Shown here one piece after another: positions 1 to 31,500 of a stretch of DNA of 64,000 nt. Positions within the stretch are counted from its first letter, which is position 1. Each line of letters begins with the position of its first letter. Source of the DNA: Bugula neritina (lineage: Eukaryota; Animalia; Bryozoa); contig OZ037766.1 in assembly GCA_964035545.1 (NCBI GenBank), positions 9,972,722 through 10,036,721 of the forward strand. The letters run 5' to 3'. Under the pieces are notes generated by a model. It saw only the letters and a list, made by a program, of their open reading frames with translations, did not search any database and was not told the origin of the DNA. The position numbers and the translations under genes were made by a program.

Positions 1-2
1 TG

Positions 3-782
3 GTCAATTACCGTAGGCGCCGCGGACAGGCTGATAAGCTGAAGCCTAAGTTCGTAGGCCCCTACGTGGTCGTCGAGGCTATGCCCAATCATACGTACAA
101 GATTGAGCGCTCAGGACAGGTGTCTATCCAGAATGAGTCTCGCTTGAAACCGTATTGGGCTAGCCCCGGCGGAGTGGGAGAAGCCCCCCCGTTGTTAGAG
201 CCCAGGAGGCAGACAACAACGCGCGGGCGACGGCGGCATGGACCTGAATACGAAGTGGTCATACCGCGGGAAGAAAACTTGGTGAGAGAGGAGCGGCAGC
301 TTTTGTCAACAGAAGCGTGTCCGCCACCGCCAAGTCTAATTCCATCACTTCCAGAAACCGAGCCGGTTCCGGAAGTGCAAACCCCCACGGAGGGAGGGGC
401 TCCATCCGGAGAACAAGAAGAGGTGACTGCTGACGGTGAAGTAGAGACGCCATTAGAGGCCCCTACTAACGAACCGGCAAGCGTGTCACCCCCCCTAGAA
501 AGGGGACAGCGTACGAGGCAACCCCCCGCATACTTGAAGGACTTCGTATGTGACTGCGTTAAAAGCGGCACACATGAAAGTCTAGGGGAAAACCGTACGA
601 GAAAAGAATCGAGCAAATGTGGGAGTTGTCAACACCACGGAAATATCAACTTTTGTATCGGCGGAAGTAGAAACAAAATTCATCCGCCGGGTGCACAAAG
701 TCTTAATCACGCACCCCAACCACGTTGCTCGATCTTTTCATACGCTGATGCAGTCAAGAGTAGACGTGTTTCTAAGCAGTAG
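3..782 (+). CDS. pol: Pol polyprotein C-terminus (integrase tail, Pro/Glu-rich linker, Cys-rich tail), partial
   Basis: KLKPKFVGPYVV integrase C-terminal (GPY/F) motif. Near-identical to element 2 Pol until about RQPPAYLKDFVCDC. Stop TAG at 780-782. Confidence 0.93.
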   Translation, partial: VNYRRRRGQADKLKPKFVGPYVVVEAMPNHTYKIERSGQVSIQNESRLKPYWASPGGVGEAPPLLEPRRQTTTRGRRRHGPEYEVVIPREENLVREERQLLSTEACPPPPSLIPSLPETEPVPEVQTPTEGGAPSGEQEEVTADGEVETPLEAPTNEPASVSPPLERGQRTRQPPAYLKDFVCDCVKSGTHESLGENRTRKESSKCGSCQHHGNINFCIGGSRNKIHPPGAQSLNHAPQPRCSIFSYADAVKSRRVSKQ

Positions 783-806
783 TTCAAACCATTTCACATA
801 TTCAGT

Positions 807-1883
807 ATGTCTTACGACAACAGATCGTGGGGTGAGTTAACTATATCTTAATACGAAACTAGATTGCATCGCTCAGCTCTGACTCACTGAGTCAATCGAG
901 CTGGAGATAGGTTAGTGAAATACCGTAGTAAGAACTCAGTTTGACTTAGAGATTTTTATAATCTCATTGCAATACGGTTCTATCTGACTATTCACTATCA
1001 TTAATCTCTACGAGGTAACTGAATTAGGAGTTGCCAAGCTGTTCAAGCTGACAACACAGCAGTGTACTGTACTAACACTGTTGAAACTTTTTCAGATTAC
1101 ACTCGACCCTCTACCACCAGGGTACGGGATAGAACACTTCCCGCTCCGTATCCGGAGGACTATGCTAGTGGTGACCGGCCTGAGCCACTACGCCGCCGTT
1201 GGCGGTGGGTGTCTCCACAAACCGAAGAAGAAATAGAAACAGCCTGGGGGTCCAGAGGACGGACGAGATGCCAGATCTGTGGTGAAGATTGCGCCTCTCA
1301 CCGTTCCCTTAAACTACACGTCAATGCTCATCTCCTACTAACATTCTGCCCCTGCGGGTACAATGATGTGTATCCCTACCCCGTCACCAGACACAGAGCG
1401 GCGGGCTGTTTCCCTGGAGAAAACTATGTGGTCGACGCTAAGCTGTACCCGGAGTTCCTCACACTTATACGACCTCTGGTGAAGAAGGCCATGCTATTAG
1501 CCGTTCTGTCCTCGGGGTTCCAACGTGTGTTAGACAACGCCCGCCAACAATCCCCGTTGGTGTCTGACCGCCCTCAAATTACATACACCCCCGAGGAAAT
1601 TACATATCCAGAAGAAGGAGAGATCTCCCCTACACCGGCGAAGAGACGAACCAGGTCCCCCAGTCCACCCTTGCGCCGCAGACGGACACCGTCCCCAGAC
1701 CCAGTACGCCTGGCTACAGTAGAAGAACGCCTCCTACGATTACAAGAAGAGTTCACCCAGCTGGCACCAGATCTACTTAACACTACCACAGGACTCTTCC
1801 AGCTAAAGGGATCCGTATGCCGTATGAAACGGAAACTGCGTACATGCCAAGCCAAGCACCGGCGTGCCCAACAAGGACTCTAG
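807..1883 (+). CDS. Element 1 accessory ORF3, spliced (exon 807-831 + exon 1096-1883; 270 aa): C2H2 plus CxC..H..C zinc fingers, basic/SP-rich patch, C-terminal coiled coil
   Basis: ATG807 + 8 codons + G | GTGAGT (832); TACTAAC at 1070-1076; TTTTTCAG ending at 1095. The join G|AT gives Asp in frame with the 1062-1883 ORF, which has no ATG of its own near its start. Motifs: CQIC-x12-H-x3-H, FCPCG-x11-H-x4-C, KRRTRSPSPPLRRRR, and heptads in LATVEERLLRLQEEFTQL. Confidence 0.85.
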
Positions 1884-2160
1884 TTAGACTACTCGGAGTA
1901 CTCCAACTCCGCCTCTTGGGAGAAGCCCAGATGTCATGTAAATGTTTGACTGCTTAACAGGTTATCCCCTGTCTAACACCACAGCTAGCTAGTATTCCTC
2001 GTCTATCTACAGCTGGCCAATTGTATGCAACGGATCGTTATAATGACTCTGTCTATTATTATGTCTCTTCCTGTATATTATGTATTATTTTGTCCACTGA
2101 TGTATGCAATTACTATTGAATGTTTTTTTTATATATATATCAGAAAGATGGCTTTCTGCT

Positions 2161-2171
2161 GGTGGGGGCGG
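2161..2171 (+). other. Polypurine tract of element 1
   Basis: GGTGGGGGCGG immediately 5' of the LTR TG; equivalent to GGAGGGGGCAG in element 2. Confidence 0.85.
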
Positions 2172-2476
2172 TGTGGTGGTTCGTGGAACTACCAGCAGCA
2201 CAACATGTAGGGTCGCGTAATTGACCCGGAACAATGGATAGCCAATTAGCGTAGTTGATAGTTAGCAGCAATTGTAGTTTCCCGCTGCTAACTCAGTCGA
2301 AGCTAGAGTGTGAAATAGATTAGATGTGTAACTTGTTAGAAATAATGTATCGTGTTTTTATGATGTATAGTTGTGAATAAAATATACTCGTTCACTCGAC
2401 TTAGCCTGGTGCAGTTCTATACTAGATAAATAGACTCTCTGGATAGCATATCAACCCTAATCTGAAAATTATAACA
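2172..2476 (+). repeat. 3' LTR of element 1 (305 bp)
   Basis: Begins TGTGGTGG and ends TCTGAAAATTATAACA, like the element 2 LTR. Contains AGCCAATTAGC, TCAGT (2293-2297) and AATAAA (2376-2381). Confidence 0.93.
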
Positions 2477-2874
2477 ATACATCGATTATTGATTGATGCA
2501 AAACAGCCTTATATCACGTCCCAAAAGCTACATTTAGCTGGCTCAGATATCTGCATGCCTCGCTGTAAAGATTACATAATTTTTGAAGGATAATTTAGCA
2601 TTAATTATTAAATTAGCTCCAAGATCATAGTTTGTGAGTTTTTCAACATTGAAGCATTTTTTCTTGTGAAATGTCACACCAGTATAATATTTTAAATGCT
2701 ATTTAGCAAGACCTAGCCTTCATATTTAAATATAAAAAAGCATTTTAATGCCAATTTATTTAACAGAACCAATTGGCAGGCAATTGGTGATGAAATATAT
2801 TTTTCTGGAAATTAGAACTTCATACAATGAATATATAGTTATTATCAACCAAATATAATAATATAAGTTCTTAC

Positions 2875-3085
2875 TTCTCCAACGGCCTGTAGCTGGTTGT
2901 ATTGCAGAAATAACTTCTGTCAACCTACGTTCAAACGCTTTTAAATCTACAACAAAGTTCAATAATGAATTAACCAACTAAAATACATATGAATGCTATG
3001 ATGATGCAATATAGAAATATCTGAAGAAAAAAACATATGGAACGTTAATAAAAATATTTTCACCTTCTGTTTGTTCATGAGACAT
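2875..3085 (-). CDS. CNEP1R1: Nuclear envelope phosphatase-regulatory subunit 1 (TMEM188), first two coding exons (3085-3064, 2946-2875); remaining exons presumably left of element 1
   Basis: The spliced translation [31 protein letters not shown] matches the conserved N-terminus (..[21 protein letters not shown]). GT-AG boundaries are in phase. Confidence 0.9.
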
Positions 3086-4172
3086 GATATAAAATTAGCT
3101 ACATGAATTTGTCCAAGTATAAACTCTTATTGCCTGACCAATGTGAGTAGATGGGTAAAATTCTTAGTGCCTTGATTACCATGCAGTATCCCTGTTCTAT
3201 AAATAGAAAGGATAAACTTGAGTATTGATATATCATAAAGAATATGAAGAGTTACAAAGGCTAATCCCATATGACTTCATTAGTCTGCCTAGACCTGAAA
3301 ACATCTCAGCAAAATCTAAGCAAAAATTTTGTGGGAAAATTAAAAATGTGAACAAATTTGTTATAACACTTTAGTAAAAATGAAGAGAGACAAGTATATT
3401 CGCTAAGCATGTTATATAGAGTATGTTGATATTTTTTATGTAAATGTAGTCAACTATGTGTGCTGCCTATTTGTAGTTTAACTAGCTTTTTACCTCAACC
3501 TACAATGGATAAAGGGGGCACTGATAGGTCAAAAAGTTTTGAATAGGTTTGAAGAGTAAAGTGTTAAATTCCGTTATATCAGCATTATCATCAAACATGA
3601 TGAGTTTTTTTAGAATATGACTTCACTTCACAGCTTTATTATGGACATGCATGTTGTGTTGTTATTTCCAGGGATAAAATTTGCTAAAAAATTTAGAGAT
3701 AAAATTTAGCTAAAATTGTAGATTTGACTAAATTGAAAATTTTTAATTGACTTGCTGCAAGTTGTTTAAATATAAGAAACTTTAAAGCCAAAAATTTATC
3801 AACAGAATATTTAGCTTCCACAGTCGGTGCTAAAAAAATAAATTGGTTAACATATACATAGCTCTTTAATAAAAATGTAAAGTAATTCGAGCGATTCACA
3901 ATCATTTCAATGCTGTTGGACAAAATCAAAAGTCGTAATGAGATGACATTTAACTCTTATGGTTATGGTTACTTTCAATATTATTTCTTGAAAGTGAATG
4001 CTAGCAAATTATAAAATCTTTTAAGTAACTCACAAATTTATTTGTATTTATTGTAATGGATTTTGGGGTTACCTCTTAAAGCTGTCTTTTCTTGTAATAA
4101 TATTTTATACGCTTATTTTGCACTCGATAGAATTGCCTTCCCTTACAATAATATTTTATACGTTTTAATTGT

Positions 4173-4432
4173 TGTCATGTAAACCCAATTTCGGCTGGAG
4201 TCCAGGGCTACGAAGTTCAGGGTGCCGATTCGGGCCGAGATCAGATAGAATATTTTAGAAGTCGCGGCGCCCGATTTCTAGAGTATATAAGGGGGCGGGC
4301 CTGCCATTATAGAACAGCCTACCATTGGAGCCAAAAGAGGACACACCACTGATAGACTTTTACACTTTTCTTCTGCTGCAATCAAGTATTATCTACACCT
4401 AGATATCGTCTTCTCTCTCTTTCATTACGACA
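4173..4432 (+). mobile_element. Possible solo/decayed LTR or promoter-like island with heat-shock-element-like motifs and a TATA box
   Basis: GC-richer island, TGTCA...TTACGACA ends, GAATATTTTAGAA, TTCTAGAG and TATATAAGGGGGCGGG. No matching TSD seen. Confidence 0.35.
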
Positions 4433-5319
4433 AGGAGTCATGTTCTCCAGTTAGCTTTTCCAACCCACAAAACTATCACAATATTACTAGGTAGCAACTA
4501 TCCACTGATTTCAGAACTTTTTTAACTAAATGCGTATTTAATTTCCTATTCATAACATTGCATTTACTTAAAGTTGATCATATTTTTGCAAGTCAACAGA
4601 AATTGACTCCAGTACATTCATGTTATTAAATATTATTATAATTGAAATATTTTTAAACATTATTTGATTTAATTTGTTTAGCCATTATCGTTGATTTGAG
4701 GTGACTATGACCTAACCCTACATGTTAAACATGCGTTGTACTTAGTCAATGTTATTACTTATTACCCATGATAAAAACGCACAAGGGTTTATAGTCATCA
4801 TCTATGTGAGTACCCTTGGAAAGGGTTTTTTAAGCAGGCTGCGAAATTTTTCATGGTAAATGAGAAATTATGACTGAATACCCCTCCTAATATCACCAAT
4901 GGCCTTTATTTTCTTCAGGCCACTGACCTCATGTGTACTAAGCCAGTGCTCCAAGCCTTAGACTACAACTGCTCTGAATATAAATGTTTAAATATATTAT
5001 ATACTTGAAAATTGAAATGTAAAATCAAAAGAATCAGTATGATTATTGTTACAATCGATATCATTTAAATGTGATCCTTATAATTATAATGACTGTTTTT
5101 AGCATTTGCCTTAAACTAGCACTTCATCTACTCAGTCTAAAAACAGAGAGAGCCAACAGATTTACTATTGACCTTAGAGTCTAGCCACAAATTTTACTTT
5201 AGAACTAGTCTTACTTTTAGTCGCTACTAAACTTTTCCTTTAACTTTTAAGTTTAGCTGTATACAATTAGTATTACAGTAAATTTTAGTTGGATACTAAC
5301 CAAAATCATAATCATTAAT

Positions 5320-6030
5320 TAATGAAATTAGTATTACTATTAGCCTAATACTAACCCTAATATTGATAGTAATAATAGTACTAAGACTTATACGAATACT
5401 AATAGTAATACTATTACTATAACTATTACTTTACTAGGTCTAATAGTAATAGTAATACTAATAGTAAATAATTTACTATTTGAGTATTACTATTAGTATT
5501 ACTATTACTATTAGTATTAACTTCAAACATTAACTACTACTATTAGTATAACTATAAGTATACTTAGTTACTACGTTTACTCTTAGTCTTAGTAATACTT
5601 ATAGCTATACTAATACTAATAGTAATACTAGTAAATGTAATACTCAGTCTCATACCAATACTTATACTGTAATACTAATACTAATAGTAATACAGTATAA
5701 CTATTACTAGTAATACTAATAGTAATACAGTATAACTATTACTAGTAATACTAATAGTAATACTAATAGTAATACTAATAGTATTACTATAACTACTACT
5801 ATTAGACTTAGTATTACTATTACTATTAGTATTACTATAAGTATAACTATTACGATAACTATTAGTATTAGTAATACTAATGCTAATAGTAATACTAATA
5901 GTAAATGTAAATGTAATACTAATACTAATAGTAATAGTAATACTAATAGTTCTAATAGTAATACTAATACTAATAGTAATACTAATACTAATAGAAATAG
6001 TAATACTAATAGTAATTACTAATTAGTAAT
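5320..6030. repeat. Degenerate AT-rich satellite of TAGTAA/TACTAA units in both orientations
   Basis: Runs of taatagtaatac and its complement gtattactatta are interleaved, with a local duplication of a ~35-nt block near 5680-5750. Confidence 0.85.
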
Positions 6031-7770
6031 TTTAGAAGATGATGAACTCTTTAAGTTTATTTAATAAAATAATACACGAAAAAAAAAGCTGAAATTAAAC
6101 TTTGCAATCTGATTCAGTATTTCATTTATTTGATTTTATTAATATCATAATTTATAACTATATCAGTATGAGTATAACTGTAGGTATAAGTACAAGTAAT
6201 TTACTATTGAATTTGATTAAAGATTAACGCAACTTTACATAGTGATGGGGACTAAGTTTATTATTATTTATATTGTATAAATTATTGCAATAATATTTTG
6301 TTCGTTGTATGTGGTGGATATTTGGACTAGCAAGGATAAACATCCAGACAATTTTCGATGTGCATTTTTAGAAGATAACTCCAAATAATTCATTAACGCT
6401 TTATCCATTCTGCATTGTGCCCTAACAGTAATTTATTATCAGGTTATCAATGAGATGTTAAATCACGAATTTTAAAATAATTATAGCTTTTTTAATTATG
6501 CAAACCTTTTTGCTTGAAAAGCTTTTGTCAAAGTTTATTAAATTTTTCTATAGCAAAAATGGTACATGAAGATTGTTTTCAAGAATATAAAATGACAGCA
6601 ACATCTATGCTGACAATCTGTCGCTGCAACAGAAAAACACTCACATTACCTCACTAGTTTTTACCAAGTACATTAACTAACAACTGAAGTGAATATAAAT
6701 TTCAACTACTGCTGCTTCTGATTCTTTTCTCTTAGATATATAATATATTATACATATTATACAGATTGCCTCGTAACCAACATAAAATTCACCTTGAAAA
6801 ATGCCCCAAATTTATTGAATGCACAGTAATTCTTCAACTACAGCTGACCCTTATATAATTAGAAGCTAATTGGCCACAGTAATCCTGTTTTGTTTTTGTT
6901 TTCAGAGACGTTCTCTGTGATCATATACTGCATATTAAAAATATATTTTTATAAAATATGTCTTACTTGATGGCAATAAATATTGCAGATTGATATGCTG
7001 AAATCTTATGCGATCTTTATGCACAATTGAGATATTATTGGTCATGTATGCATTTTCCAAGAAAATCTAGTGCATAAATTGCTCAGAACTGTGCGAAAAA
7101 TATTTTACCTCAGTAATTTATAGCTAAATGCACTCTATTCAGCAAGTCGATAGAAGGAAATGCAAAAAACCTCATCTCCAGACCTACACAATTTCCGATT
7201 GCAATGGCCAACCCCAACTCAAAAGTGCATCCATAAATGAGGCTGCAGAGAATTCAACCTCATGACGTTTCTGTTGCACACTTGGTTATATTACTGCCCC
7301 AACATAGTAGTGAAAGCAAAAGAAGTTCCGGGTCCTTCTTTGAGCAATGATATTTAAATATGAACTATTCAAGGGCACTATCTCTAATAAATGGGAAATA
7401 AATTACCTTTTGAACTTTTAGTGCATTTAAAAAATTTTGATTGCATAAGCATTGAGCAGGTTTTACTATTGAAATTTGATCAGCATCTTTCTTTTAATTT
7501 CATGAACACAACAAACTGCTTGGGTTGATAGTTTTCATATTTTATTTGAACATGTTGCGACCTATAAATGTGAACAGTAAACATCAGATATTACACATGA
7601 GCATTTTATACATGTATTACTATCTACTGCCATAGACCAGTCAGAAGTTGTAGATATTCTTCCTTTATCTGCTTTCTTAATTTATTTGTAACAGGGTAGA
7701 TGACAAGGTACAAGCTAGAGTTCTCAATATTAATGCAGTTCCAACAACCACAAAAAGATGATTGCACATA

Positions 7771-12700: not shown

Positions 12701-13182
12701 ACCCAAACACTAAGCTTTTTCATTCCAATAGCTGTTATGAGCTTAAAGCAAAATATAATGTACTTGCGCATGGCATAAGTAATTTTCACTGGGTAAAAAG
12801 CCTAACTTACGTAGTAAACTTCTCGTTTTTCCATTTTATGTTCATGAGGTAACCTCCACTCTTGCGGGTGTGGGTCCTTAGGTTCTGGCAATTTGAGATC
12901 AGCCAAGCCATATGAGCTTGAAGATGATGAGGCCAAGGGGCTTGCAGCCCTTCCATTAACCAAGGCATTTGCCATGTACGCAGTTTTTTAACTACAACAA
13001 AATCAGAACTTCTGTACTTTTAGCTTTTTTAATACCAACTGAAATTGTAAATATTTATAAGCGATTTCTGTTTATTCTGTTGTAGTTCTCAAAATTTAAT
13101 AACTTGTTTTTTAGTAGTTGCAGGATCACCAGTAAAGTAAAATTGTCATCATTATTTTATGCAGCTCACACCTATGTAATTA

Positions 13183-13318
<136 letters not shown>

Positions 13319-14723
13319 AATTTATATTATCAGTTGTAATAATAATTCAGAATGCACATTATAATGGGGTAGTGAGTAAATGGTTAGGAAATGATTGGAT
13401 TCTGCGGTTAGTAAGCTGAAGGATAAATGATGTCCTCATCAAAACTTCTTTGTTGCTCACTGCATATCCAATTGACCTTATTGTTGCATTTGCGGAGGAA
13501 GAGGATGTGTGACTGGTTATAAAGTTGTTATTATAATAATTAGATGGGCAATACTGTGATGATCTACTACTTTGGTTTGGTGAGGAATTCCTCTGCAGTG
13601 GAATAAACTTGATATGCTTTGTTTGAAATTGATAAACATTTTGATTTAGGGCAATTTGTATCCTTAAAAATGGCCTGCTATCCAACACTACACTAGTTTA
13701 ATAATAACTTAATGAGTTCGAAGAGCCATAAACGGCACTTTGCTACTTTTTACTACTGAATTATACAATTATTTCATCTATAAGACATAAGTATTTATTA
13801 GCAGTAAAAGGATTTCTAAGTCTCCTTGTTTTCTCTTAATTGTAAATTACGAGAACATGTTCAGTTTTAGCTGAACTTTACTATTTTCAGAAAAGTTTTC
13901 AAAGGTAGTTATAGCGTTTAGCAAAGCATAATACTCATTTCAGAATAATTTGGATTTCTTTCACCAACATTACAATATATTTGTAGTCTGCAGTTTACTA
14001 TAACCCTAAACTTTAACCTAATATTTCAGATGATAAAGAATCCAACATTACTTCTTGAATCCATTGGTTATGTAATGGACAGCGCATCTTTAAAATGCTT
14101 CATCTAGTATATTATATCATTTATTACTATCTCAACTTTTCTTCTCCAACTACAAGTAATAAGAGTTTATAATACTACCTTCCTGTGACTGCAACTGTCT
14201 CTTTTGTATTTTAGCTGGTTACTAGGAAGCAGAGGCCTTGCTTGCAAACTAGAATTATCTCCTTTTCTAGAGAGAATCTCTGAAGCCGGTAAGTTGTGGA
14301 TTTTGTGAATTATCCTATTATGTATTTCTAATCAAACATTTTGAGAGGTGAAACTTATAAGTTAAACATGTAGTACACAGATAGCAACTTTTACCTTATT
14401 GATGATCTTCTGTCTTTGGTAGCCTGTTTCCACACAGTGTGCTACTTACTATATTACTACTTGCTACTGCACACAAGCTGTTGGCAGATACTTAATACAC
14501 CATAGAAATGTATAGTGATAAGTCACAATATCAACATACTGGCATATGCATTATGTGAATAATACTTTCATTATTACAAATTTTAATATTGTTATTGCTG
14601 CCTAATATCTTAATTGTTATCAGCTCGTTTATGCAAATAATATAGCAATATATTCAAATAAACTCTTTGTATTATGCTCTCCAATGAATATTGCCAATCT
14701 ATTTAAAACACTATAGGCTAAAC

Positions 14724-19552: not shown

Positions 19553-22500
19553 ATGTCCAAAGCCATGGCCAGAAAACCCTCATCAAGAAAAGATGAAAAG
19601 AATAGAATAGTGATGCCTACTGCTGCTATTGGCTCTAAAGGAAAATATATTCCTTTGACTATTAAAATCATTGACACTGGAGAGGTTTTTGCATTGAGAA
19701 ATGTTACATCAATGATGACTGTGAAGGAACTCAAAAGTTATTTAGAATTTGCAACAGGAATTCCAGTAAATCTTCAAAGGATACATTATTTAGATGAAGG
19801 TTTGGAAACTATAAAAGCTCTTAATTTGTATATGTTTTGATAGTCAATGCAAACTACAAAGCATAGAATAATAATATAATTTACAGTTATAGCTACAATG
19901 ATAAGTGGAAATCCCCGCCACTCCTATTATCACATATTCACAATTAATAAATTATACATTAATATAATCATTTTAGGAGAGCTTCAAGAACACACTGATA
20001 TAAAATCTAATGACATCGTTGCTGGTGGCCAACTCCACATGACAATATGGCATACTTGGGTGAAGCTTATCAATGCAGTTGTAACAAATAACATCAGTGA
20101 GGTTAGTTTGTATTACTTTTAACAATTATATAATTATTATATAAACGTGAGGTACACAAAACAAACCTAGATTACTAATCGTTATTAGCCATGTTGGCAC
20201 AATGCTTTTTCCACTTAATACTCTGTTTTGGCAAATTTCTTTTTATTTAATCATTACCGCAGGAAGTTGTTGATACCTGCTGGGTATAAAAACAATTGAA
20301 GATACTAGACATGTGCTTATATTGGTCATCAAGGGGGTCAACAAACGTCAGACTGATCATCAGTTTTTTCTGTGACTGCTGATAACTTCGTTCATTTGCA
20401 TTTTTGATATGATCCTATTCTCACAATCTTCTGTTTGCCTAGAATCTGGATATATTGATTATTATTGTTTTCTAAAATTTTGCTCAAATAGTTCAGGTTT
20501 TTTTCTTCATGTTTTTGCATCTACTCTCAGTCAGGATCTTTTTAACAATGAAGCTTATGTATTGCTTCTAATGATACTATCTCTATCGTGTTATTAAAAC
20601 TACAACAACATGAAACGATCAAAAAAATATTTTTAAAAGCAAATACAAATGAACAAAAGTTATTATTTCTACAGCTTTACAGTGTTTTCAAAATATCAGA
20701 TGTAATTATTTTATTTCAACTGAATGGCTTATTTTGTAACAATCATTCTACTGCAATTTGCATATTTTGGCTCAAGCTGTTCATGACATCCACATTGAAG
20801 GTAAGAAATACTTTGAAATAAGTATAACTTGTTTTAACCTCACACATTGTAGGTGCTGAAACTTGGCGTGACACAAGATTCAAAGTATAGAACACCTAAC
20901 GCAAATTATATGAATGCAAAAGGAGTGCAAGCATGGCTGGCCGAAAGAGCCTTCATTGCATTATACGTTGCTTGCCACCGTGGCCATGCTAAGCTTGTGC
21001 AGACACTTGTTGAGTCAGGTATTTTTCAGAACTAATTCTGGTACTGTTGTTCTACTAAATAGATACTTTTACAACTTTTTTTATATGAAAGTAAGCATGG
21101 TATACTTTGTTAAGCATTTTCTTTATTAAAATCAGCGATAATTTCTATTACTTGAATATTGAAAAATATATCTGTGTATACTGTATAATATACATCAATA
21201 TTGTATACTTTGAACCAGTTACATGTCAAGAACCATTTACATGTATATTGTGGTGGCTCGTGGAGCTACCAGCAACACAATACGCAAGGTTGCGTATTGA
21301 CCCGGAACAATGTATTAGCCAATTAGCTAGGCTGTTTTATAAGTAATAGTAGCCGCTTCGCGCTACTAGTTCAGTTGAGGATAGTGCTGTAAATTAAATA
21401 GACGTGCGTATCATTACTGTTGTACATTAGATTTTATTATGTATTCTTGTATTAAAATATAACGATATCTACTCGACTTAACTCGGTGAGGTTTCTCTAG
21501 TGATAAATAGACTCTCTTGGTGACACATCAACCCTAAATCTGAAAATTATAACAGTGGTGGCAGCGGTGGGATAGTGTATATCAAAGATGGAGACTGAAA
21601 ATGCTAGAATGCAACCACCCCCAGTAGAAGGTGAGCGTAGAAATGCTGTTAATCCTGTGAATCGTGAAGGAGAAGAAGCTTATAGACATTGCTTGAAAGC
21701 TCCTACCTTTACTGGGTCGGAAGATGTCGAACAATTTATACAAGAATTTAGAGAGGTAATGGAAGTTGCTCAATGGCCGCCTAGAGTGGCCCTTATTCAA
21801 TTGCGGAGAGCGGTGACGGAGCAAGCCAAGCCGTACGGAGTGGGAACGGACGTAGACGGGATACTGGCTGCGCTGCGGGCCCGTTTTGGCACCTCCGTAA
21901 TAGACGCGAGGACCAAGCTAGAGAGATTGTGCCGCACCCCGCGGACCTCGCTGCAAGAACATGCCGCGACGGTGAAGAAGCTGGCGCAGATTGCATATAG
22001 CGATCTGCCAGCACAACACCAAGAGCGTTACACCTATGACGCCTTTGTCCAGTCACTAAACGACCTGGGCCTAGACCATCACCTACGAGCTAAAGGGATA
22101 ACCAGAATAGAGGATGCCCTGAAGGCTGGAGAAGCTTACCTGTTGGCTACCCAAATGCATCGAGCACAAAGGAACCCACCAGTAGTTGGAGTCAGCGCTG
22201 CCAGGGCTACGACAGGCTCCGAAGCCCTCCCGCTGGAAGCCGAAGTGGACCGTATGGTAGAGATGCTGGGACAACTGGTAACCATTCTGGCCGGTGCTGG
22301 CCCCGGTCGGGCCCTGCGGGTGCCCCCAACACCTGTGGGGCAGGGCTGGAGTAGCGCTGATCAGGACCAGGGACAGAAAGGACGACCCCAATACCAGGGG
22401 GCGTTAAACTGTCACGGCCCGCGGACACTCTCCCTCCCCGCGGGCCGCAACTAAAGGAGTATGGTGGAACACGCCGTCGTCTGTCCGTACGGACACGGCG

Positions 22501-25500
22501 GAACATTCCACCCGAGTGGCAGGTACCACGCAGGACTAGTAGGCCCGCACAACGGCCCAGTACCTTCTCCCTGCCACTCGCTAACCGGTTTCACCGGTTA
22601 CCTCGGGAAGAGGAGCCCGCCACTGAAATGGAGCCAGAAGGCCCAGTGGAGAGCCCCAAACCCCGCCGGCACCAACCTCGCCGCCGGAAGCCCCGTAAAC
22701 CACGGGTGAAACCCCCGCCGTCCTGTCAATTCAGGACAGCACATGCGGGGGGGGGTGAAAGTACAACCACATGGGGAGAGCTATTTTCTACCCGGAAAGG
22801 TGGCTGGCAACGCCGTCACTTTCCTGCTCGACTCCGGTTGTACTACCAACCTTCTCAGTCGTAGAGTCTTTGAGGCACTGCCCCGCCGGGACAGGGATAG
22901 AGTACGACCGTATACTGGAGAACATGGCACCCTGGCAGACGGGTCATGTATCCCCTTTTATGGTATTATCGAGCTCCCTGGGCGTGTCCGAGATCAGGCT
23001 GTACAGGAGACCTTTATCATAGGTCAACTGGAGGAAGATGCTATCCTCGGAATGCCCTTCTTGAAGCAACACCAGTGCCGAATAGATTTTAGTAAGTCGG
23101 TGGTGCTGATGGGCGGGCGAGAACTCGCCTGTGTGGATAAGTTTGGGCGTCCTCTGGTGGGCGGTGTTCAGGTAGTTCGAAACTGCACCGTACCCGGACG
23201 CTCCAGAGCTACTATCCACTGCCGAGTGAACAGCAACCGGATAGCCAGGCTCGGGGTCGTTGAAAGCGCGCACGAAAAGATCCAACTCGCCAGTAGTTTA
23301 AACCGACTAACTGAGCGAGGGGAGGTCTTAGTGCAGTGCGTCAACCCCTTTACCGAGCCCATTGAGCTCCCAGCTGGGTCAATGCTGGGCCGGTTCCATT
23401 CCGTCCAGGAAGAGGACGTGGGCCCGTCGCTGGGTGACGCGACGGAGGCACCCCCTCGACACTCTATTCAGGGACGAGGGGCAGTCCCAACACATCTCCG
23501 GGAGTTATACGAAACAGCCAGTGGCGGCTGCGCGAGTAACAGAGAACGCCAAGCTATGGCCAAGTTACTACGCGACTACGGTGATGTGTTCAGCAGCGGA
23601 GAGCATGACGTGGGACTGACTGGAATTGTCAGACACGAAATACCGCTGACTGCAGGGACAGTCCCTGTCCGGCAGCCCACGCGCAGGCTGGGGCCGGAGA
23701 AAGAGAAGGAGGTTAGCCGACAAGTACGGGATCTTCTGGACCGGGGACTGATAGAGCCCGCTCATAGTGCGTGGAGCTCGCCAGTCGTACTGGTCCGGAA
23801 GAAAGACGGCAGTTGGCGGTTCTGTGTGGACTACCGCAAACTCAATAGCGTAACCATACAGGACGCCTACCCTCTACCTCGTATTGACGAGTCATTGGAC
23901 GCCCTAGCCGGCAGCAAGTACTTCAGTACGTTAGACTTGCTAAGCGGCTATTGGCAGGTTCCTCTGAGTCCTGACGCCCAAGAAAAAGCGGCGTTTATCA
24001 CACGGGACGGTTTGTGGAAGTGGAAGGTGCTGCCCTTCGGGTTAACCTCCGCCCCAGCCACCTTCCAGAGGCTGATGGAACAAGTCCTTAGCGGACTCCA
24101 TTGGAAGACACTGCTGGTCTACCTCGATGATGTCATCGTAATCTCTCCAGACTTCGAGACACATGTCAGTCGTCTGCAGGAGGTTTTCGAGAGACTCCGA
24201 GGTGCCGGTCTTAAGCTCAAACCTTCCAAGTGCGCTCTGTTGCAGCCGGAGGTCAAGTACCTGGGGCACGTTGTCGGTCGAAACGGCGTGGCAACGGATC
24301 CCGAAAAGGTACGGGCAGTAGAAGACTGGGTCACCCCCCAAGACTTGACCGGACTCCGGGCTTTCTTGGGGCTGGTAGGGTATTACAGGCAATACATACC
24401 AGACTTTGCGGGCATAGCCCAGCCGTTAAACCGGCTCACCGCAAAGGGAGTGACGTGGCAGTGGACTCCAGTCGAACAAGGAGCGTTCGACCGCCTCAAG
24501 GGCTGCCTCCTAACGGCGCCCATCTTGGCCTACCCAGACCCCACTCTGGAGTACATCCTAGACACGGACGCCAGTGACCAGAATGTTGGCGCTGTGCTGT
24601 CACAAGTGCAGGAAGGCCGAGAGGTAGTAGTAGCCTACTACAGCAAGTCTCTCTCTCCCGCTGAACGAAATTACTGCACTACCCGCAAGGAGCTGCTGGC
24701 AGTAATCAAGTCAGTGAAGCACTTCAGACCATACCTATATGGCAGGAAGTTCCGGCTGCGTACGGATCATGCCTCGCTGATCTGGTTGTGCAGGAGAGCA
24801 GAGCCCTCTAGTCAGGTCGCCCGGTGGCTCGAAATCCTAGCTGAATTCTCATACCGGATCGAACATCGACCGGGCAAGAGACACAGCAATGCGGATGGGC
24901 TGAGTCGCCGACCGGACGGAGGTTGCAAACAGTGTCTCAACATCGAGAGGAGGGATGGAGGTCCCCCACGATGCGAGTTGGAGACGCTGGCTCATCACGG
25001 AGCACCGTTTGACTGGGATCAAGGTCAACTCAGGCAAAGAGTTGATGAGTCCCCGGAGGATGTACAAAACCTCCGCGCCAACCCTGTACTGGCCGGTAAT
25101 GTTCGAGAGCTGAAGAAGCTCCAAGAAGAGCTGCCTGGAGTCGTGGCAGACATATACCGGGCCAAAAGGGAAGGGCGACGACCCAGCGAGGAACGCATAC
25201 GACAGGGATGCGCCGAGTTCCGGCTATACTGTCAGCGTTGGGACTCACTGCGGATCGGGCAGGATGGGTTGCTAACCATCTCTCTAGCTGCCAGCGGCAG
25301 ACACCCGGAAAGGAAGAGGGTAGTCTGCCCCACAGCCATCCGCCGTGAGTTGATTTGGGATACTCACAAGCAGGCCCACGCAGGGGTCAAGCGAGTGATA
25401 TCCAAACTACGACTCCGGTGGTATTGGCCGCAGATGGAGCGTGACGTCCGGCTCAGAGTCAAACAGTGTGAGATCTGCCAGGCCAGTAAGCATAGCCGCC

Positions 25501-28500
25501 CCCCTGGTGAAGCAGGACGGCGGAGGCTATATGCTGGTAGGCCCTGGCAAGTAGTCGCTGTAGACCTGGTCGGACCCATGCCCCTGACCCCCAGAGGCAA
25601 TAATTGGATCCTAGTACTAACCGACCACTTTACTAGGTGGGCGGATGCTCTGGCTATCCCAGATGCATCAGCCCCAACAGTGGCCAGGGCGCTAGACCAA
25701 CATGTATTCTGTTATTTTGGGCTTCCCGAACAGATACACTCTGATCAAGGCGCTCAATTCCAGTCTCAACTGATGAGCGACCTTTGCCACCTCTGGGGAG
25801 TAAATCAGAGCAGGACCACCCCCTACCACCCTCAAGGTAACGGGGTGGTGGAGCGCAACAACCGGATGCTAGGTGATGCGCTCCGGAGTCTCCTCCTTGG
25901 ACGAGGTCAAGAGGAATGGGATACGGTGTTGCCGCAAGTCATGCGTGCATACCGTAGCACCCCACACACCAGTACTGGTGAGACCCCAAACCTCTTGATG
26001 CTCGGGAGAGAGACTCGTGTCCCTGACCATCTCACCTATCACGTTCCAGAGCAAGACAACTCGGTTCACGAGTATGCCAGTGAACTAGTGGAACGGATGA
26101 AGGCCGCACACGATATACTGCGTCAACAGCAGTGGAAGGTGCGGCACGAAGATTCCGATGAACCACCTCTCTATCAAACGGGAGATAAGGTGTGGATGGT
26201 CAATTACCGTAGGCGTCGCGGACAGGCTGATAAACTGAAGCCTAAGTTCGTAGGCCCCTACGTGGTCGTCGAGGCTATGCCCAATCATACGTACAAGATT
26301 GAGCGCTCAGGACAGGTGTCTATCCAGAATGAGTCTCGCTTGAAACCGTATTGGGCTAGCCCTGACGGAGTGGGAGAAGCCCCCCCGTTGTTAGAGCCCA
26401 GGAGGCAGACAACGACGCGCGGGCGACGGCGGCATGGACCTGAATACGAAGTGGTCATACCGCGGGAGGAAAACTTGGTGAGAGAGGAGCGGCAGCTTTT
26501 GTCAACAGAAGCGTGTCCGCCACCGCCAAGTCTAATTCCATCACTTCCAGAAACCGAGCCGGTTCCGGAAGTGCAAACCCCCACGGAGGGAGGGGCTCCA
26601 TCCGGAGAACAAGAAGAGGTGACCGCTAACGGTGAAGTAGAGACGCCATTAGAGGCCCCTACTAACGAACCGGCAAGCGTGTCACCCCCCCTAGGAAGGG
26701 GACAGCGTACGAGGAAACCCCCACCGTATTTGAAAGACTTCGTATGTGACTGCATTAGAAGCGGCGCACATGAAAGTCTAGGGGAAAACCGTACGATAAA
26801 ATGTTGGAGTTGTGAACCCCACGCAAATATCAACTTTTGCGAGGGCGGAATAGTGGGAGGAATTAATGCGCGTAAAGCAAATAGTTCCGACCTCGTGCCT
26901 CAGAAACGATGCTCAGCCTTTTCCTATGCTGACATCGCCAAAGGCAGACGTATCTCACAACCAGCTCCAACCTTACCAAGAACGTTGAGTATGGACATTA
27001 ATACCGAGTTCCCAGGTAAGCCAGTATAAGTCTTGTATTCCTATTCATGGAAACGGGCTCGATGCCAGTAAATTCTGAACTAATTCAGCAGATTGAATCA
27101 GAATTACTGGGAACCACGTTTCATGTGAATGACGATGAAGACACTGTAATGGCCGACGGTCTGTTAGACCTGGAGCTAGACACTGTTCTTGGTCAGTCCA
27201 CACATGATTCATCAGTTCCTCGAGTGCATTCCAAAAGCTGTGACTCTCAGGCTAGCAACGGTCGACAGTCACTAGAATTATGTTGTAAAGATCCACCGCG
27301 ATCTAACAATAATTCTACTTTTGTAGACACACTCGCGCCCGTCTCTCCGGGCATGCCTTCCCTAGAGATGGCGTGGGACCCAGAGCCGGCCCCAACAACC
27401 TCTACAACCAGGCAACTGCCACCCCAGTTGGAAGCAACCTCCAACTGGATTACCCCTGCCACAGAGAGAGAAATCAGGACCCATCAAGGAGGTGAGAGTA
27501 ATCGTGAATGCAACCTCTGCCAGCAGCGATTCACAACCCACCGCAGACTAAAAGTACACTTGCCGCAGCACTACATCACCACTTTCTGCCCTTGCGGAGA
27601 ATATAGCTACAATCGTGATTACCTATTGCGGCACCAACGTACTATGCAGTGTTATCAAGGGCATGTCTATGAAGTAGACGAATCATCCTATCCTGCCTTT
27701 CTCAACGCCATCAAACCACTCATCACTGACTCAGCTCGGCTATCTCGCCTGGAGCAAGGCTTCCCTTCCCCGCGACCCATCATCTCTGGAGCCGCAGATA
27801 AACCTACACAGTCTACTAACTCTCCACCTCACAGTCCTCTACGCATGCCTCATACCTTTCCTCGTGTCGTACTACAGAGGGTAGACACAAATGCGTATAC
27901 ACTCCCTCCTCCCCTTCCATCCTCAGAGCGGAAAAGACATAGACAGCCGACTTCCTCTCGCTCGTCCCCCTGGGCCCGCAACCTACGTGAAGTAGAAGCT
28001 AGGGCACACGACTTGGAGCAAGAAGTGTACAGACTGGCCCCACGGGTGCAGGCTGCATCCAGTGAACTCAAATATTTACAGGAGTCTATTAAACGCATGA
28101 AGCGTGCGGCCCGCAGTTAACTTGAGTCTACCTACAATTCCATACTACTCTTCCCCTACCTCTCTGTGGCATTCCCTACCGTAATGGTGGCACGTACTCT
28201 ACATGTAGATAGGACCTTCTTTTGCTTATTACTTAGTGTGCACGTTATATATACCTGTATATTTTTATCAGTTGTTGTTTTTTTGTATATACTTTTATAC
28301 TGTTCTCTTACCCCCCCCCCCAACGAAGTATACGTTTTTTTATGTGAATTTTATTTTATCAGAAAGTGGGCTTTCTGCTGGAGGGGGCAGTGTGGTGGCT
28401 CGTGGAGCTACCAGCAACACAATACGCAAGGTTGCGTATTGACCCGGAACAATGTATTAGCCAATTAGCTAGGCTGTTTTATAAGTAATAGTAGCCGCTT

Positions 28501-31500
28501 CGCGCTACTAGTTCAGTTGAGGATAGTGCTGTAAATTAAATAGACGTGCGTATCATTACTGTTGTACATTAGATTTTATTATGTATTCTTGTATTAAAAT
28601 ATAACGATATCTACTCGACTTAACTCGGTGAGGTTTCTCTAGTGATAAATAGACTCTCTTGGTGACACATCAACCCTAAATCTGAAAATTATAACAATAT
28701 GTTAATAGCTTTTGTTTTGCTCAGACTCTGAAAGTGATATTAATCTATATTTATGTTATAGGTGCTAATGTGAATATGAAAACGGTTTTAGGAAGAACTC
28801 CTTTGCATGTTTCAGCTGCCCAAAACAGAGGTTCAATAGTTGACATTCTTCTGAACAACGGTACACAGTATATTTCAGAATCAATTTTTATCTTTAGCTA
28901 CAATACATGTAATAATGTAGCTAAACACTGTCTACAGCACACTCTCGCTTTCAGAATTTGATGATTAATAATAAACCCCTATGCTTTGCATTATGGGTAG
29001 AGATATCAAGGATGATTATGGTGTATAAAATATGTTATTAAAGGTGCTGATGTGAATGAGGTGGATAAAATGGGAGATACCGCTTTGGCTATAGCTGAGC
29101 GTTTTGAACACAAAGATGGGGCAAGGCATCTCTTTTTATTCCGCTGGCAAGTACGAGCAGCGCAGGCTGAGAAGGTTCCGGAAGTACCATTGTACTACCA
29201 CCAGCAGTGCGACACAGCTAATCCGGTTTGGCTGGCCGGCACTCAGGTAAGACAGTAGTACAGATGCTACATGTGAGCTGATTGGCTAACAATGCACCAA
29301 TTATAGCTTGTGTCTTGGTGTAAAGTTGGTAATGAAAATTAAACAAAATGTAACACAAATATTTCAACAGAGTTTGTATTATATGGTGTCAAATTTAACT
29401 GCAGTATGCTATTCCTAAATCCAAGAGAGTTTGTGCAACATTATATAATGGAAAAAAAATTCTATATGGTGCTGCTCCTGAATCTTAACAATTAAATGTT
29501 CTATGCACAAGTTTTAAAGTTTTTTCAGCACTTTTGAAAATGTTCTTTTTAAGTTTCTCTACCATTTGTGATGAGCTGCCACACACAATCAACCCATTAT
29601 CTAATATTTTATCAGGGTCAGCTTTATTATGCTGCCAAAGATAAATTCACCGGTGAATATGGTGGCACTGGAATCGGGGCAGTACCCGCTCTTACCAAGC
29701 CTAATGATGTTCCAATAGGCAAGTAATTTTTACTAAGCATGGTATAGGTTTTATACAATTCTCATTAAGTGAGAGAAGGGCATTGTAAGGTGCACTTTCG
29801 AGGTTGTTAGCTGGCAAGTAGTTTAGTACATAACATGTTTTTATCAGAACAACCTTCTGGTACTTTTAAAATATTACAAGTTGTTCATATTAGCCAAAAG
29901 TGTGTTATCTCAATGTTCATATTAAAATAGTATTTCATCTTTAACTCTACATAACTTAATGCAATGCTTAATACCCCTTCGCCTAGTGGCTATTAGCCTT
30001 TATGTAACTGGAAATAAGTTGGAAAAAGCATTTCAATAGATTTTTAGTGAGCATTTATGGTGGTATAAATTAACTACCAGTACATAGATAATGGTTTTGT
30101 TACTATGAAGGGCTCTGTGTAAATTTATTAGAATATTATAGTATATACAACTTCTCCATCATTTACATAATGTGCTACATGAACTTTTCTACTGTACCTG
30201 CTCTACTTTTAAGAGATAAATAACATCTGTTTGATTTTAAAAAGAGGAAAGAACGAAGTCGAAAATAGATTACGACATGTGGCTATCTCAGAAGGAAAAA
30301 GAAGATGAGATGAAAAATATGGCAGTGAAAAGAGAGAAAGCAGCCAAGAAGCTGGAAGAAGAAAAAAAGTAAGATTAGTACATTGCATGCCTGCTGAGTG
30401 GGTGGGTGCTGTGTATACAGTATTGTTGTTATAGTTATTCAAATTGAACAAATTGTGATGGCTAATTCCCTTTTGTCACTGCAAAAGCAGTTAGCGCAAT
30501 TAACACACAAATATAATAATGGAGTCACATTTCCAAATTGGGATGACAACTTCACAGATGCAATAATTGATGTGAAATATATCAGCTGATACGATGCTTA
30601 GATTTTAATTTGCATCTGCCTTTTATTAGCTGATGCGCTTTTATTTGCAAGACCTGAGAATCTAGTTTATTTATACTTACTATATAAATGTTAGACACAC
30701 TAAAATCTATCTGAGCAATAATGGCATTTAGCATGTAGTTAATAATAAAAAAAGGTTGCTATAGCATGTCACTGTTTTTCAAAACTTCCATATGCTCTAA
30801 TTATTAAGTTTAGAAAATATCAAAACAGATCGAAGCTATATTCTGGTTTGATATATTTCATGCGAGAAATAATGAATTGAGTTGAAATTAATATAAAATA
30901 CTCGGTTGCCATCTTTTAGTCAAAGCCATGACTACCTTTTTTGCTCTAAAGATGGTAATAAAGGATTTGTAATGCATTTCTAATCTGTTGTACTTTAGGA
31001 TAAACAAGTGGTTGGCTAGAAAATATATTCTGTTGTCTAAATCCAGACATTCAAAATGAATATATTCAGTACATTGATTGTATACTATAAAATATCTGCA
31101 AGGTATATTACGCTCTTACTAAAACCTGCTTGTTACTAACTTGGCTTTTTGCTGTTTGACATTATACAAGAAATCATAATTTATGTTCGCATAGCCTTTA
31201 AATATATTTAAGTGTTCTTTGTTTTACTATACGCTTATTTATTTTACATGCTATGTTTTAATTAGCTTGTTTTGACTTATTTAAAATGACTACTATATTA
31301 CAGTTGAATGCCTTTAATTATTTATATTAGAACCACTATTATTTATTATCAAGCATTTGGATATCATCAAGTATTAAAAATTGTAGCATAAGTTTAAAGT
31401 TTTTTTCCAAAACCTATGCTTATAATGCTATCTTGAAGTTTAGATGTTTGGCTTATGTTTTATTTCCAGAGCTTTAATGTTGCTGACATATAAGGTTCAT

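Follow-up and report, generated by a model that had tools for sequence, protein, structure and literature searches.

How two retrotransposon copies can be nearly identical over the end of pol and so different in everything that follows is the question raised by a window of 64,000 nucleotides from the bryozoan Bugula neritina (contig OZ037766.1). The original prediction was that recombination near the end of pol had joined one enzymatic core to two old 3' cassettes, in which the third open reading frame (ORF3) and the long terminal repeat (LTR) travel as a unit. Our overall account, to which we assign a probability of about 0.8, is that two old cassettes have been recombined repeatedly onto pol/LTR backbones, by what would be template switching.

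Both copies, named E1 and E2, belong to one Ty3/gypsy (Metaviridae) LTR retrotransposon family, and all the features described below lie on the forward strand. E1 (1-2476) is cut at the window edge and lacks its 5' part, and E2 (21249-28696) is a full-length element; the two lie 26 kb apart in the same orientation. All the terminal features of Ty3/gypsy elements are present in E2: direct LTRs of the TG...CA type (21249..21554 and 28391..28696) that are identical at 306/306 positions, a 4-bp target-site duplication, ATAT (21245-21248 and 28697-28700), a primer-binding site read from the sequence at 21556..21573, and a G-rich polypurine tract (PPT). The primer-binding site begins with TGG, one base past the LTR, and may correspond to the complement of the 3' end of a tRNA-Leu; over the window, ARAGORN detected no tRNA gene and Rfam gave no match.

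Inside E2, an ORF of 288 aa in the gag position (21588..22454) has neither a Pfam match nor a CCHC knuckle. It is followed by the pol ORF (22743..27029), in which the Pfam matches Asp_protease_2 (17-106), RVT_1 (351-510), RT_RNaseH (599-702), Integrase_H2C2 (863-917), rve (933-1030) and SH3_Tf2-1 (1147-1187) reproduce the order protease, reverse transcriptase, RNase H and integrase expected for Ty3/gypsy, before a C-terminal tail. The E1 pol segment (1..782, stop codon at 780-782), recognized as an ORF with a match to SH3_Tf2-1, contains the end of the integrase SH3-like domain, after which comes a long post-integrase tail. A CCHC-like knuckle (C-x2-C-x2-H-x5-C) is found in the translations at the C terminus of pol, at 618..656 in E1 and at the equivalent 26802-26840 in E2, and is absent from the gag-like ORF of the latter. 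Directly on the 5' side of the 3' LTR (2172..2476 in E1, 305 nt, TG...CA), both elements carry a conserved hairpin, with a 7-bp stem in E1, and the PPT (2141..2171 in E1, 28360..28390 in E2). The hairpin is conserved, yet its folding energy is unexceptional (z about -1.6).

When positions 1-2476 were globally aligned with 26197-28697, a stepwise loss of identity was observed. The first stretch, 1..498 in E1 and 26197..26694 in E2, starts at or before the window edge and differs at only 8 sites (98.4% identity), all of them transitions and 6 of them synonymous. The next stretch (499..600) has 10 differing sites and 90% identity to E2, against 84-86% to other loci of the family, and this change of density is significant (8/498 vs. 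10/102, Fisher's exact test, p = 1.8e-4). Identity then falls to 59-65% over 600-790, where the knuckle region forms an island (82% identical, family D12), and beyond 790 both elements are unalignable, with values of about 40-55% that correspond to the level of a forced alignment. Identity between the LTRs is 79% in the initial 95 nt, 59% in the central part and 73% in the terminal part, and the PPT, the hairpin and the initial ~75 nt of the LTR show equal conservation across the two cassette types defined below. The encoded ORF3 proteins align over 275 aa with 29% identity (E = 6e-29). This profile bears out what had been described at the outset, namely about 8 differences up to ~495, a drop around 500-600 and a subsequent collapse, distantly similar ORF3 proteins, and LTRs with diverged interiors and conserved ends. 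The accompanying description of a near-identical integrase refers to the last ~45 codons of the SH3-like domain and to ~120 codons of the tail, not to the catalytic core; "one enzymatic core" is thus an extrapolation, because the rest of E1's pol lies outside the window.

To place both elements among their relatives, 12 related contigs were retrieved by exact-protein look-up; they come from metagenomes that are probably of B. neritina. A metagenome contig collection scanned with the integrase/tail protein and with an ORF3 alignment yielded no relatives, nor did a viral contig collection in a single scan, and the scanned contig collection evidently lacks samples holding this family. One distant ORF3 relative from another sample lies on a 2-kb contig that provides no context. 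Among the 12 related contigs, ORF3 falls into two lineages, A, which includes E1, and B, which includes E2, separated in the ORF3 tree with 100/100 support by a branch whose length is ~2.7 substitutions per site, in agreement with the prediction that the two 3' cassettes are old.

The deep A/B divergence is limited to ~600-2135 in E1 coordinates. From the identity steps and the trees, the A-type cassette of E1 (601..2135) comprises the C-terminal end of pol, a mini-exon, an intron, exon 2 of ORF3 and the 3' UTR, and is unalignable with the B type apart from short islands; the B-type cassette of E2 (26797..28355) contains the pol end, mini-exon, an intron with an N-terminal extension, the ORF3 body and the 3' UTR. 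The pol part of the cassette corresponds to the last ~60 codons, and in E1 the hairpin/PPT is the 3' limit of the variable region. Within the types the ORF3 body was the oldest segment in the three pairs tested (3/3). Between E2 and the B-type locus L001, dS was 0.35 for integrase, 0.39 for the tail, 0.31 for the N-terminal extension and 1.12 for the ORF3 body, and between E1 and L003 the ORF3 dS was 1.23, with a dN/dS of 0.11.

ORF3 appears to be expressed through a conserved ATG-containing mini-exon of 25 nt and a predicted intron. In E1 the ORF3 frame itself has no ATG upstream of the zinc fingers, and the mini-exon (807..831, ATG plus 22 nt) is followed by a GTGAGT donor and a predicted intron of 264 nt (832..1095), in which a CTAAC branch site and a pyrimidine tract precede a CAG acceptor. 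In E2 the mini-exon (26991..27015) lies inside the end of the pol ORF and is followed by a GTAAGC donor and a predicted intron of 311 nt (27016..27326), within which a conserved, in-frame extension of 85 aa starts at 27047; in the B type the dN/dS of this extension is 0.27-0.31. Mini-exon length and donor are kept in five A-type and two B-type elements, and the frame-preserving arrangement of 25-nt mini-exon, GTRAGY donor and CTAAC...YAG acceptor recurs in as many as 11 elements, both types included.

The product of exon 2 (1096..1883 in E1, from the ORF, alignment and predicted fold; 27327..28120 in E2, from the ORF and alignment) is a protein not described before, which combines two C2H2-like fingers with a coiled coil. 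Its family comprises 341 clusters at 50% identity, without a Pfam family or a structural relative, and its host elements are a lophotrochozoan lineage of Ty3/gypsy. In E1 the fingers are followed by a helical domain, a linker and the C-terminal coiled coil. The ligand set is C-x2-C...H-x3-H in finger 1 and a C-x-C...H-x4-C variant in finger 2; among 68 sequences, conservation of the ligands C59, C62, H75 and H79 is at least 90%. The predicted fold has a core with pLDDT >90, two finger-like units and a terminal helix of 59 residues. Matches to C2H2 and coiled-coil profiles are weak only: the local fold of the fingers is compatible with C2H2, with a Pfam score of 15.7 bits against a cut-off of 25.2, and a PDB profile search gave a weak match to a SALL3 finger (E = 0.004). 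Tandem fingers of SALL4 (ZFC1), ZBTB10 (ZF1-2) and BCL11A (ZF4-6) superpose locally on ORF3 at 2.6-2.9 Å over ~50 residues, but the Foldseek E values exceed 0.6 and the helical domain and coiled coil have no counterpart in those proteins; the fold search against PDB and BFVD returned no significant match. The dN/dS values of exon 2 (E1, 0.11 vs. L003 and 0.11 vs. L004; E2, 0.14 vs. L001) indicate that ORF3 evolves under purifying selection. An envelope function was rejected, as ORF3 has no envelope Pfam match, its predicted fold is of the finger/helical/coiled-coil kind and no transmembrane segment was detected (maximum 19-residue hydropathy of 1.51 and 0.58). Judging from these predictions, ORF3 is most plausibly a soluble, dimeric, nucleic-acid-binding accessory factor translated from a spliced subgenomic RNA.

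The histories of adjacent segments were then compared by tree building and AU tests, with 6-7 pol sequences, all from metagenome contigs of uncertain completeness, and with tested clades that were partly picked after the distance tables had been seen. The integrase tree contained the groups (L007_B,L012_A) and (L011_A,(L003_A,(E2_B,L001_B))), where the suffix gives the ORF3 type, with every branch starred. Monophyly of the A type was rejected on the integrase data (delta lnL 76.6), and the pol clades were rejected on the ORF3 data (p = 3e-42 and p = 1e-9), so that each data set rejects the clades of the other. Likewise, E1 grouped with E2 in the tail tree (100/100), whereas in the tree of the pol end, ~100 nt downstream, E1 grouped with A-type loci and an E1+E2 clade was rejected (AU p = 1e-7), as expected from a recombinant mosaic pair. 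Because the integrase, tail, pol-end and ORF3 trees disagree so strongly, and because identity changes in sharp steps, recombination between these elements is established. It is also pervasive and nested in the E1/E2 family, with similar mosaics in the unlinked contigs L003 and L007 vs. L012.

A merely faster evolution of the 3' module compared with pol, without recombination, would draw on the weak constraint of the pol tail (dN/dS 0.53), 3' UTR and LTR interior, but a neutral divergence of 1.6% cannot adjoin saturated divergence, dS differs at least three-fold between adjacent coding segments and the trees of these segments reject one another; rate heterogeneity was rejected on these grounds and retains practically no probability. 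An assembly chimera, in which reads of an E2-like copy were wrongly assembled into the 5' part of E1, is very improbable too. E1 does sit at the window edge, and its junction is reproduced by none of the related metagenome contigs, where the tail closest to that of E1 has 69% identity. Nevertheless, the E1 tract differs from E2 at 8 sites and is not an identical copy, the join falls within a region of 90% identity instead of at a repeat edge, and such a pol tail is joined to an A-type cassette at the same boundary in the independent assemblies L003, L011 and L012. Local ectopic gene conversion, by which DNA repair would have copied a pol-tail patch between the resident E1 and E2 copies, would profit from their closeness and common orientation and from the position of the tract end, ~100 bp short of the collapse of homology, which is typical of conversion tracts. 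However, the tract has accumulated 8 differences in 498 bp compared with none in the 306 bp of the E2 LTRs, which date the insertion, and the probability of zero LTR differences is 0.007 if the 1.6% divergence postdates the insertion of E2. A tract divergence older than this insertion counts against local conversion after insertion, not against an exchange of DNA among older copies; as mosaics of the same kind are also found in unlinked contigs, conversion between the resident copies is unlikely.

The last element of the original prediction, that ORF3 and LTR travel as a unit, perhaps because each ORF3 type recognizes its own LTR and both are exchanged as co-adapted partners, draws its support from the recent E1/E2 event, where everything 3' of ~500 differs, including the LTR. 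Within the four LTRs available for the shared family, the quartet sites also favour (E1,L002)|(E2,L001) by 15:3:1, with 10 of the 15 at LTR positions 81-160, so that by this count LTR subtype goes with ORF3 type. Simple linkage after one crossover predicts the same, however, and four taxa agree by chance one time in three. On a wider scale, the LTRs of E1 and L002 (A) and of E2 and L001 (B) form a single family with 74-82% identity, despite ORF3 proteins that have only 29% of their residues in common, whereas those of L009/L011 (A), L012 (A) and L007 (B) are unrelated to it. Therefore, it is the pol clade that LTR family tracks, one such family is used with either ORF3 type, and the LTR lies outside the old cassette. 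Of the congruence that had been anticipated, the conflict of ORF3 with pol was found and the agreement of ORF3 with LTR was not; at the family level ORF3 and LTR assort independently, an outcome named beforehand as speaking against cognate pairs. Furthermore, the start of the LTR, PPT and hairpin are conserved equally across types, and in the B-type L001 the last ~115 nt before the LTR are closer to A-type copies than to E2. Cognate pairs of ORF3 and LTR are thus improbable, and nothing in the data singles out the LTR as the target of ORF3.

In our preferred account, A and B cassettes were repeatedly placed by recombination on pol/LTR backbones that are far more similar to each other, and three layers can be told apart. 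The first is the deep A/B split, restricted to ~601-2135 of E1; the second consists, for A as for B, of an ORF3 body and a 3' UTR that predate their flanks; and the third is a recent exchange leaving the E1/E2 tract of at least 498 bp and 98.4% identity. This tract stops ~100 bp short of the deep boundary, at a point of still good homology, and the 499..600 stretch separates the recent breakpoint from that boundary. The most likely mechanism would be that reverse transcriptase switched templates between co-packaged RNAs from different subfamilies. As such switching would need well-conserved stretches, pol and the PPT/LTR start would become homogenized, and the fast-diverging ORF3 island would retain old lineages. 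Taken by itself, the sequence fits this mechanism and DNA-level gene conversion among dispersed copies alike.

Recombination of this kind is already known, and the novelty here lies in the ORF3 family and in how deeply it is split into two types. Reverse transcriptase-mediated recombination among variants of LTR elements has been documented, including double events that exchange internal segments, and in rover, an endogenous retrovirus (ERV) of Drosophila, and other insect ERVs, variants with different ORF3 and LTR occur side by side and recombine, probably by strand switching in pseudodiploid particles (PMC12992720). First-generation rover recombinants have mismatched LTRs, and the ORF3 of insect ERVs is an F-type envelope gene whose tree mirrors those of Pol and Gag, against exchange between lineages (PMC12992720). 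The bryozoan elements resemble them as Ty3/gypsy-type elements with a third ORF and recombining variants, but their ORF3 encodes a zinc-finger/coiled-coil protein with a tree in conflict with that of integrase; the identical LTRs mark E2 as a copy made later from a recombinant.

Mosaic LTR retrotransposons are known between related families with enough homology for template switching, and PMC5668417 is among the papers cited for them in PMC12992720, but E1 and E2 differ from these in having a third gene and a deep two-type cassette between homogenized flanks. Complex retroviruses carry 3' accessory genes such as tax/rex of HTLV/BLV and tas/bet of foamy viruses, which, like ORF3, lie between the structural genes and the 3' LTR, have their start codon on a tiny upstream exon spliced to the main exon, as predicted here, and encode small, soluble, non-envelope products, as ORF3 is also predicted to do. 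In contrast, ORF3 has no sequence or fold similarity to them and its host is an invertebrate, metavirus-type retrotransposon. Additional ORFs of plant Ty3/gypsy elements and the env-like ORF3 of other invertebrate gypsy elements are also located downstream of pol, but encode unrelated proteins, and we know of no report of a conserved mini-exon plus intron or an old two-lineage cassette for them.

As recombination of LTR elements is established biology, the swap itself is unsurprising, and its lesson is that one pair of copies provides no basis for assuming an "ORF3 plus LTR" unit. Of wider significance is an undescribed family of accessory genes whose mini-exon and intron recall the expression of 3' regulatory genes in complex retroviruses, and also a clean natural example of island-like divergence, with an old ORF3 body between a homogenized pol and LTR start. 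A doubtful but conceivable extension is that A and B are functionally distinct specificity modules, each pairing an ORF3 factor with a cis-acting target that lies in the pol end, intron or 3' UTR of the cassette itself, kept over a very long time by frequency-dependent selection and repeatedly re-assorted onto whichever pol/LTR backbones are successful at the time. If so, selection could act, for example, via self-recognition of the element RNA or escape from host silencing, and the system, although concerned with an intracellular accessory protein, would be comparable to envelope subgroups or immunity cassettes. The E1/E2 family can be used to ask if such a two-type pattern arises from homology-limited template switching alone or from selection.

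The G+C content is about 30% across the window but rises in two islands (1-2000 and 22000-28000), both of which are copies of a single LTR retrotransposon family. This family is an animal endogenous retroelement, and no part of the window resembles human DNA. The copy named E2 (21249-28696) is a full-length element with a 4 bp target duplication (ATAT), two identical LTRs of 306 nt each (306/306), a PBS, a gag-like ORF, a 1428 aa pol encoding protease, RT, RNase H and integrase in the Ty3/gypsy order, and a third ORF (ORF3). Of the second copy, E1 (1-2476), the window edge leaves only the 3' end, with the closing part of pol, ORF3 and an LTR of 305 nt.

At the gag-pol junction of E2 the frame is interrupted by two in-frame stops (22452-22454; 22707-22709). 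A poly-G run at ~22747-22754 has two bases more than its counterpart in L001, a related metagenome contig, and another frame is open throughout 22452-22760 and encodes a basic Arg/Pro-rich segment. Given the identity of the E2 LTRs, this interruption may mark a site of recoding, reflect an error in the homopolymer or be a genuine defect. An ankyrin-repeat gene on the + strand, oriented like E2, has exons on both sides of the element, one of them at 28761-28859 (+; Pfam Ank, 24.0 bits vs. a cut-off of 21.1), with the gene region also at 29043-29249 (+) and an upstream ankyrin-like exon at 20840-21020 (+) recognised by eye, with no Pfam match. Elsewhere in the window, 17-bp tandem repeats form long arrays at 56971-57900 and at 44961-45101 and 45464-45689, these last two sharing a related 17-mer with ~360 bp of unique sequence between them, and AT-rich minisatellite (9-12-nt units) and (AT)n/(AC)n microsatellite occupy 5334-6040 and 13175-13340.

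When both copies were aligned, E1 1-498 differed from E2 26197-26694 at 8 positions, all 8 transitions and 6 of them synonymous, and the next stretch of E1 (499-600) had 10 differences, a change in density with p = 1.8e-4 (Fisher's exact test). Identity was ~60% over 600-790, and further 3' no alignment was obtained. The ORF3 proteins were 29% identical, and the LTRs 79% identical at the start, 59% in the middle and 73% at the end. Therefore, near-identity followed by a drop and a collapse, distantly similar ORF3 proteins and LTRs with diverged interiors and better kept ends were found as in the original prediction. Its 'near-identical integrase' goes further than the visible sequence, as the window shows only ~45 codons of the E1 integrase C-terminal domain plus the post-integrase tail.

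This family was present in twelve of the loci fetched. Two JGI samples supplied every related contig except one, and their scaffold names carry AY690838, under which GenBank lists the mitochondrial genome of Bugula neritina; from this prefix we infer that both samples are B. neritina-associated metagenomes and that the window is from this bryozoan or a close one. According to ORF3, E1, L002, L003, L004, L005/L006, L009, L011 and L012 belong to type A, and E2, L001, L007/L008 and L010 to type B. The comparison rests on few loci, several of them degenerate, with stops in L005, L009, L011 and L012, a rearranged L001 and a deletion in L007. In L001, part of its own RT/RNase H/integrase region is present as an inverted duplicate (1567-2663 vs. 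2660-4498), and the forward copy lacks some of the RNase H region; this points either to rearrangement of the copy or to an artefact of assembly.

Upstream of ~E1 590, the copies E1, E2, L001 and L003 are mostly 84-95% alike irrespective of type, and downstream of it two classes appear, 35-40% alike between them and mostly 70-93% within. In the integrase tree, with all branches strongly supported, L007 (B) paired with L012 (A) and L003 (A) was nested beside E2 and L001 (B), and these data reject A-type monophyly (delta lnL 76.6). In the ORF3 tree, types A and B were split (100/100) by a branch of ~2.7 substitutions per site, as expected for the old 3' cassettes proposed. ORF3 data reject both pol clades (p = 3e-42 and p = 1e-9), and the tree of the tail (26197-26694) grouped E1 with E2 (100/100), whereas that of the pol end (26797-27029, ~100 nt further 3') grouped E1 with the A types and rejected E1 plus E2 (p = 1e-7), part of the AU hypotheses having been framed once distances were seen. 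The predicted discordance between pol and ORF3 and the recombination near the end of pol were thus corroborated; recombination is established, and it involves more than one event. The conflicting segment trees and the identity steps therefore separate two boundaries: the recent E1/E2 tract ends at ~499 and the deep cassette begins at ~600, E1 and E2 showing ordinary family-level divergence in between.

The mosaic is also nested according to synonymous divergence. Between E2 and L001 this was 0.35 in the integrase, 0.39 in the tail, 0.31 in the N-terminal extension of ORF3 and 1.12 in the ORF3 body, with identity stepping down near 27397, and the same pattern was detected for E1 vs. L003 and E1 vs. 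L002. By this higher divergence, the ORF3 body is the most anciently diverged segment in all three within-type pairs, and even among copies of one type the flanking sequence is younger than the ORF3 body and 3' UTR.

The original prediction also placed the LTR in the cassette, with congruent ORF3 and LTR trees and cognate ORF3-LTR pairs, and this part was not supported. The LTRs of E1 and L002 (A) and of E2 and L001 (B) align from end to end at 74-82%, L009 and L011 (both A) have a common LTR distinct from this family, and L007 (B) and L012 (A) each have another one; common to all are only a hairpin, the polypurine tract (PPT) and the first few LTR bases. Both ORF3 types are therefore found with one and the same LTR family, and in the copies aligned the family of the LTR goes with the pol clade. 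The LTR lies outside the old cassette, whose 3' limit is just 5' of the hairpin; in L001, A-like sequence begins ~115 nt ahead of the LTR. Among the four LTRs of the shared family, informative sites do favour grouping according to ORF3 type (15:3:1, with most sites at LTR 81-160), but this is what physical linkage since the last exchange predicts, so it does not count as evidence of functional pairing.

Regarding the 3' module itself, pol runs on for ~230 codons past the integrase SH3-like domain in a weakly constrained tail (dN/dS 0.53), at the end of which a CCHC-like knuckle (E1 618-656; E2 26802-26840) is conserved with a short conserved motif. This knuckle has unusual spacing and is an 82%-identical island within the otherwise diverged cassette; the gag-like ORF contains none. 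In E1 as in E2, splicing of ORF3 is predicted, with a 25-nt mini-exon opened by ATG (E1 807-831; E2 26991-27015), a consensus donor next to it and, 264 nt (E1) or 311 nt (E2) past the donor, a CTAAC branch site, a pyrimidine tract and a YAG acceptor that puts ORF3 back in frame. The E1 ORF3 has no ATG upstream of the zinc fingers and therefore requires the mini-exon. Up to 11 elements, A and B types among them, have the same mini-exon length, donor and acceptor, even though A and B cannot be aligned in the sequence around them. The B-type predicted intron holds an in-frame 85-aa N-terminal extension of ORF3 (E2 27047-27326), conserved in B-type homologues (dN/dS ~0.3), which may be a retained-intron isoform beside the spliced one; A-type elements have no counterpart of this frame. 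In the B-type L007 (5454-5640; also in L008) the entire post-integrase tail, pol end and mini-exon are missing (E2 element positions about 5045-5971), and ORF3 almost adjoins the integrase.

ORF3 is followed by a fast-evolving 3' UTR, the conserved hairpin and PPT (E1 2141-2171; E2 28360-28390) and the LTR. The hairpin adjoins the PPT on its 5' side, with a 7-bp stem and a variable 4-5 nt loop, and is kept in all family members with the region present (L001 7956, L002 1167, L005 10443, L007 6862, L009 5409, L011 ~7860, L012 ~6600), unrelated LTRs notwithstanding; its folding energy does not stand out (z about -1.6). The shared-family LTR has a second hairpin at about positions 3-21.

The ORF3 protein is under purifying selection (dN/dS 0.11-0.14). 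An envelope role was ruled out because no transmembrane segment was found in it. Its AlphaFold model, built from 68 homologues and confident in the core (pLDDT above 90), has two finger-like units (ligands C-x2-C...H-x3-H in the first and C-x-C...H-x4-C in the second), a small helical domain, a disordered linker and a 59-residue terminal helix. All Pfam C2H2 matches were sub-threshold, Foldseek against the PDB and viral models gave no significant match, the weak ones being tandem C2H2 fingers, and the profile retrieved from PDB sequences only a SALL3 finger (E = 0.004) and coiled coils. Against 1.84 billion representatives, the profile matched 341 clusters with E no higher than 0.001, 55 of them with E no higher than 1e-30, and two single-sequence homologue searches returned only unnamed matches. 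A 546-aa protein on a 2-kb contig that offers no context (L013, 340-1980; JGI sample 3300039093) covers nearly the whole profile (E about 2e-13) and, coming from a different sample, suggests that the ORF3 family probably reaches beyond this host.

With respect to timing, the absence of differences between the E2 LTRs (0/306) would have a probability of about 0.007 if the tract (8/498) had been homogenised after E2 insertion; therefore, the shared tract is older than that insertion. This age argues against local conversion between the neighbouring E1 and E2 copies and for exchange within a lineage of active elements. Template switching from one co-packaged RNA to another during reverse transcription, the standard route and one documented in related systems (PMC12992720), would be the putative route here, and exchange among older DNA copies would be expected to have the same appearance. 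As template switching needs homology, conserved stretches (pol, PPT, LTR start) would be homogenised again and again, and the fast-diverging ORF3 island, without internal recombination, would retain old lineages. Such homology-limited switching fits all three layers of the mosaic, and selection keeping two ORF3 types, although possible, would not be required.
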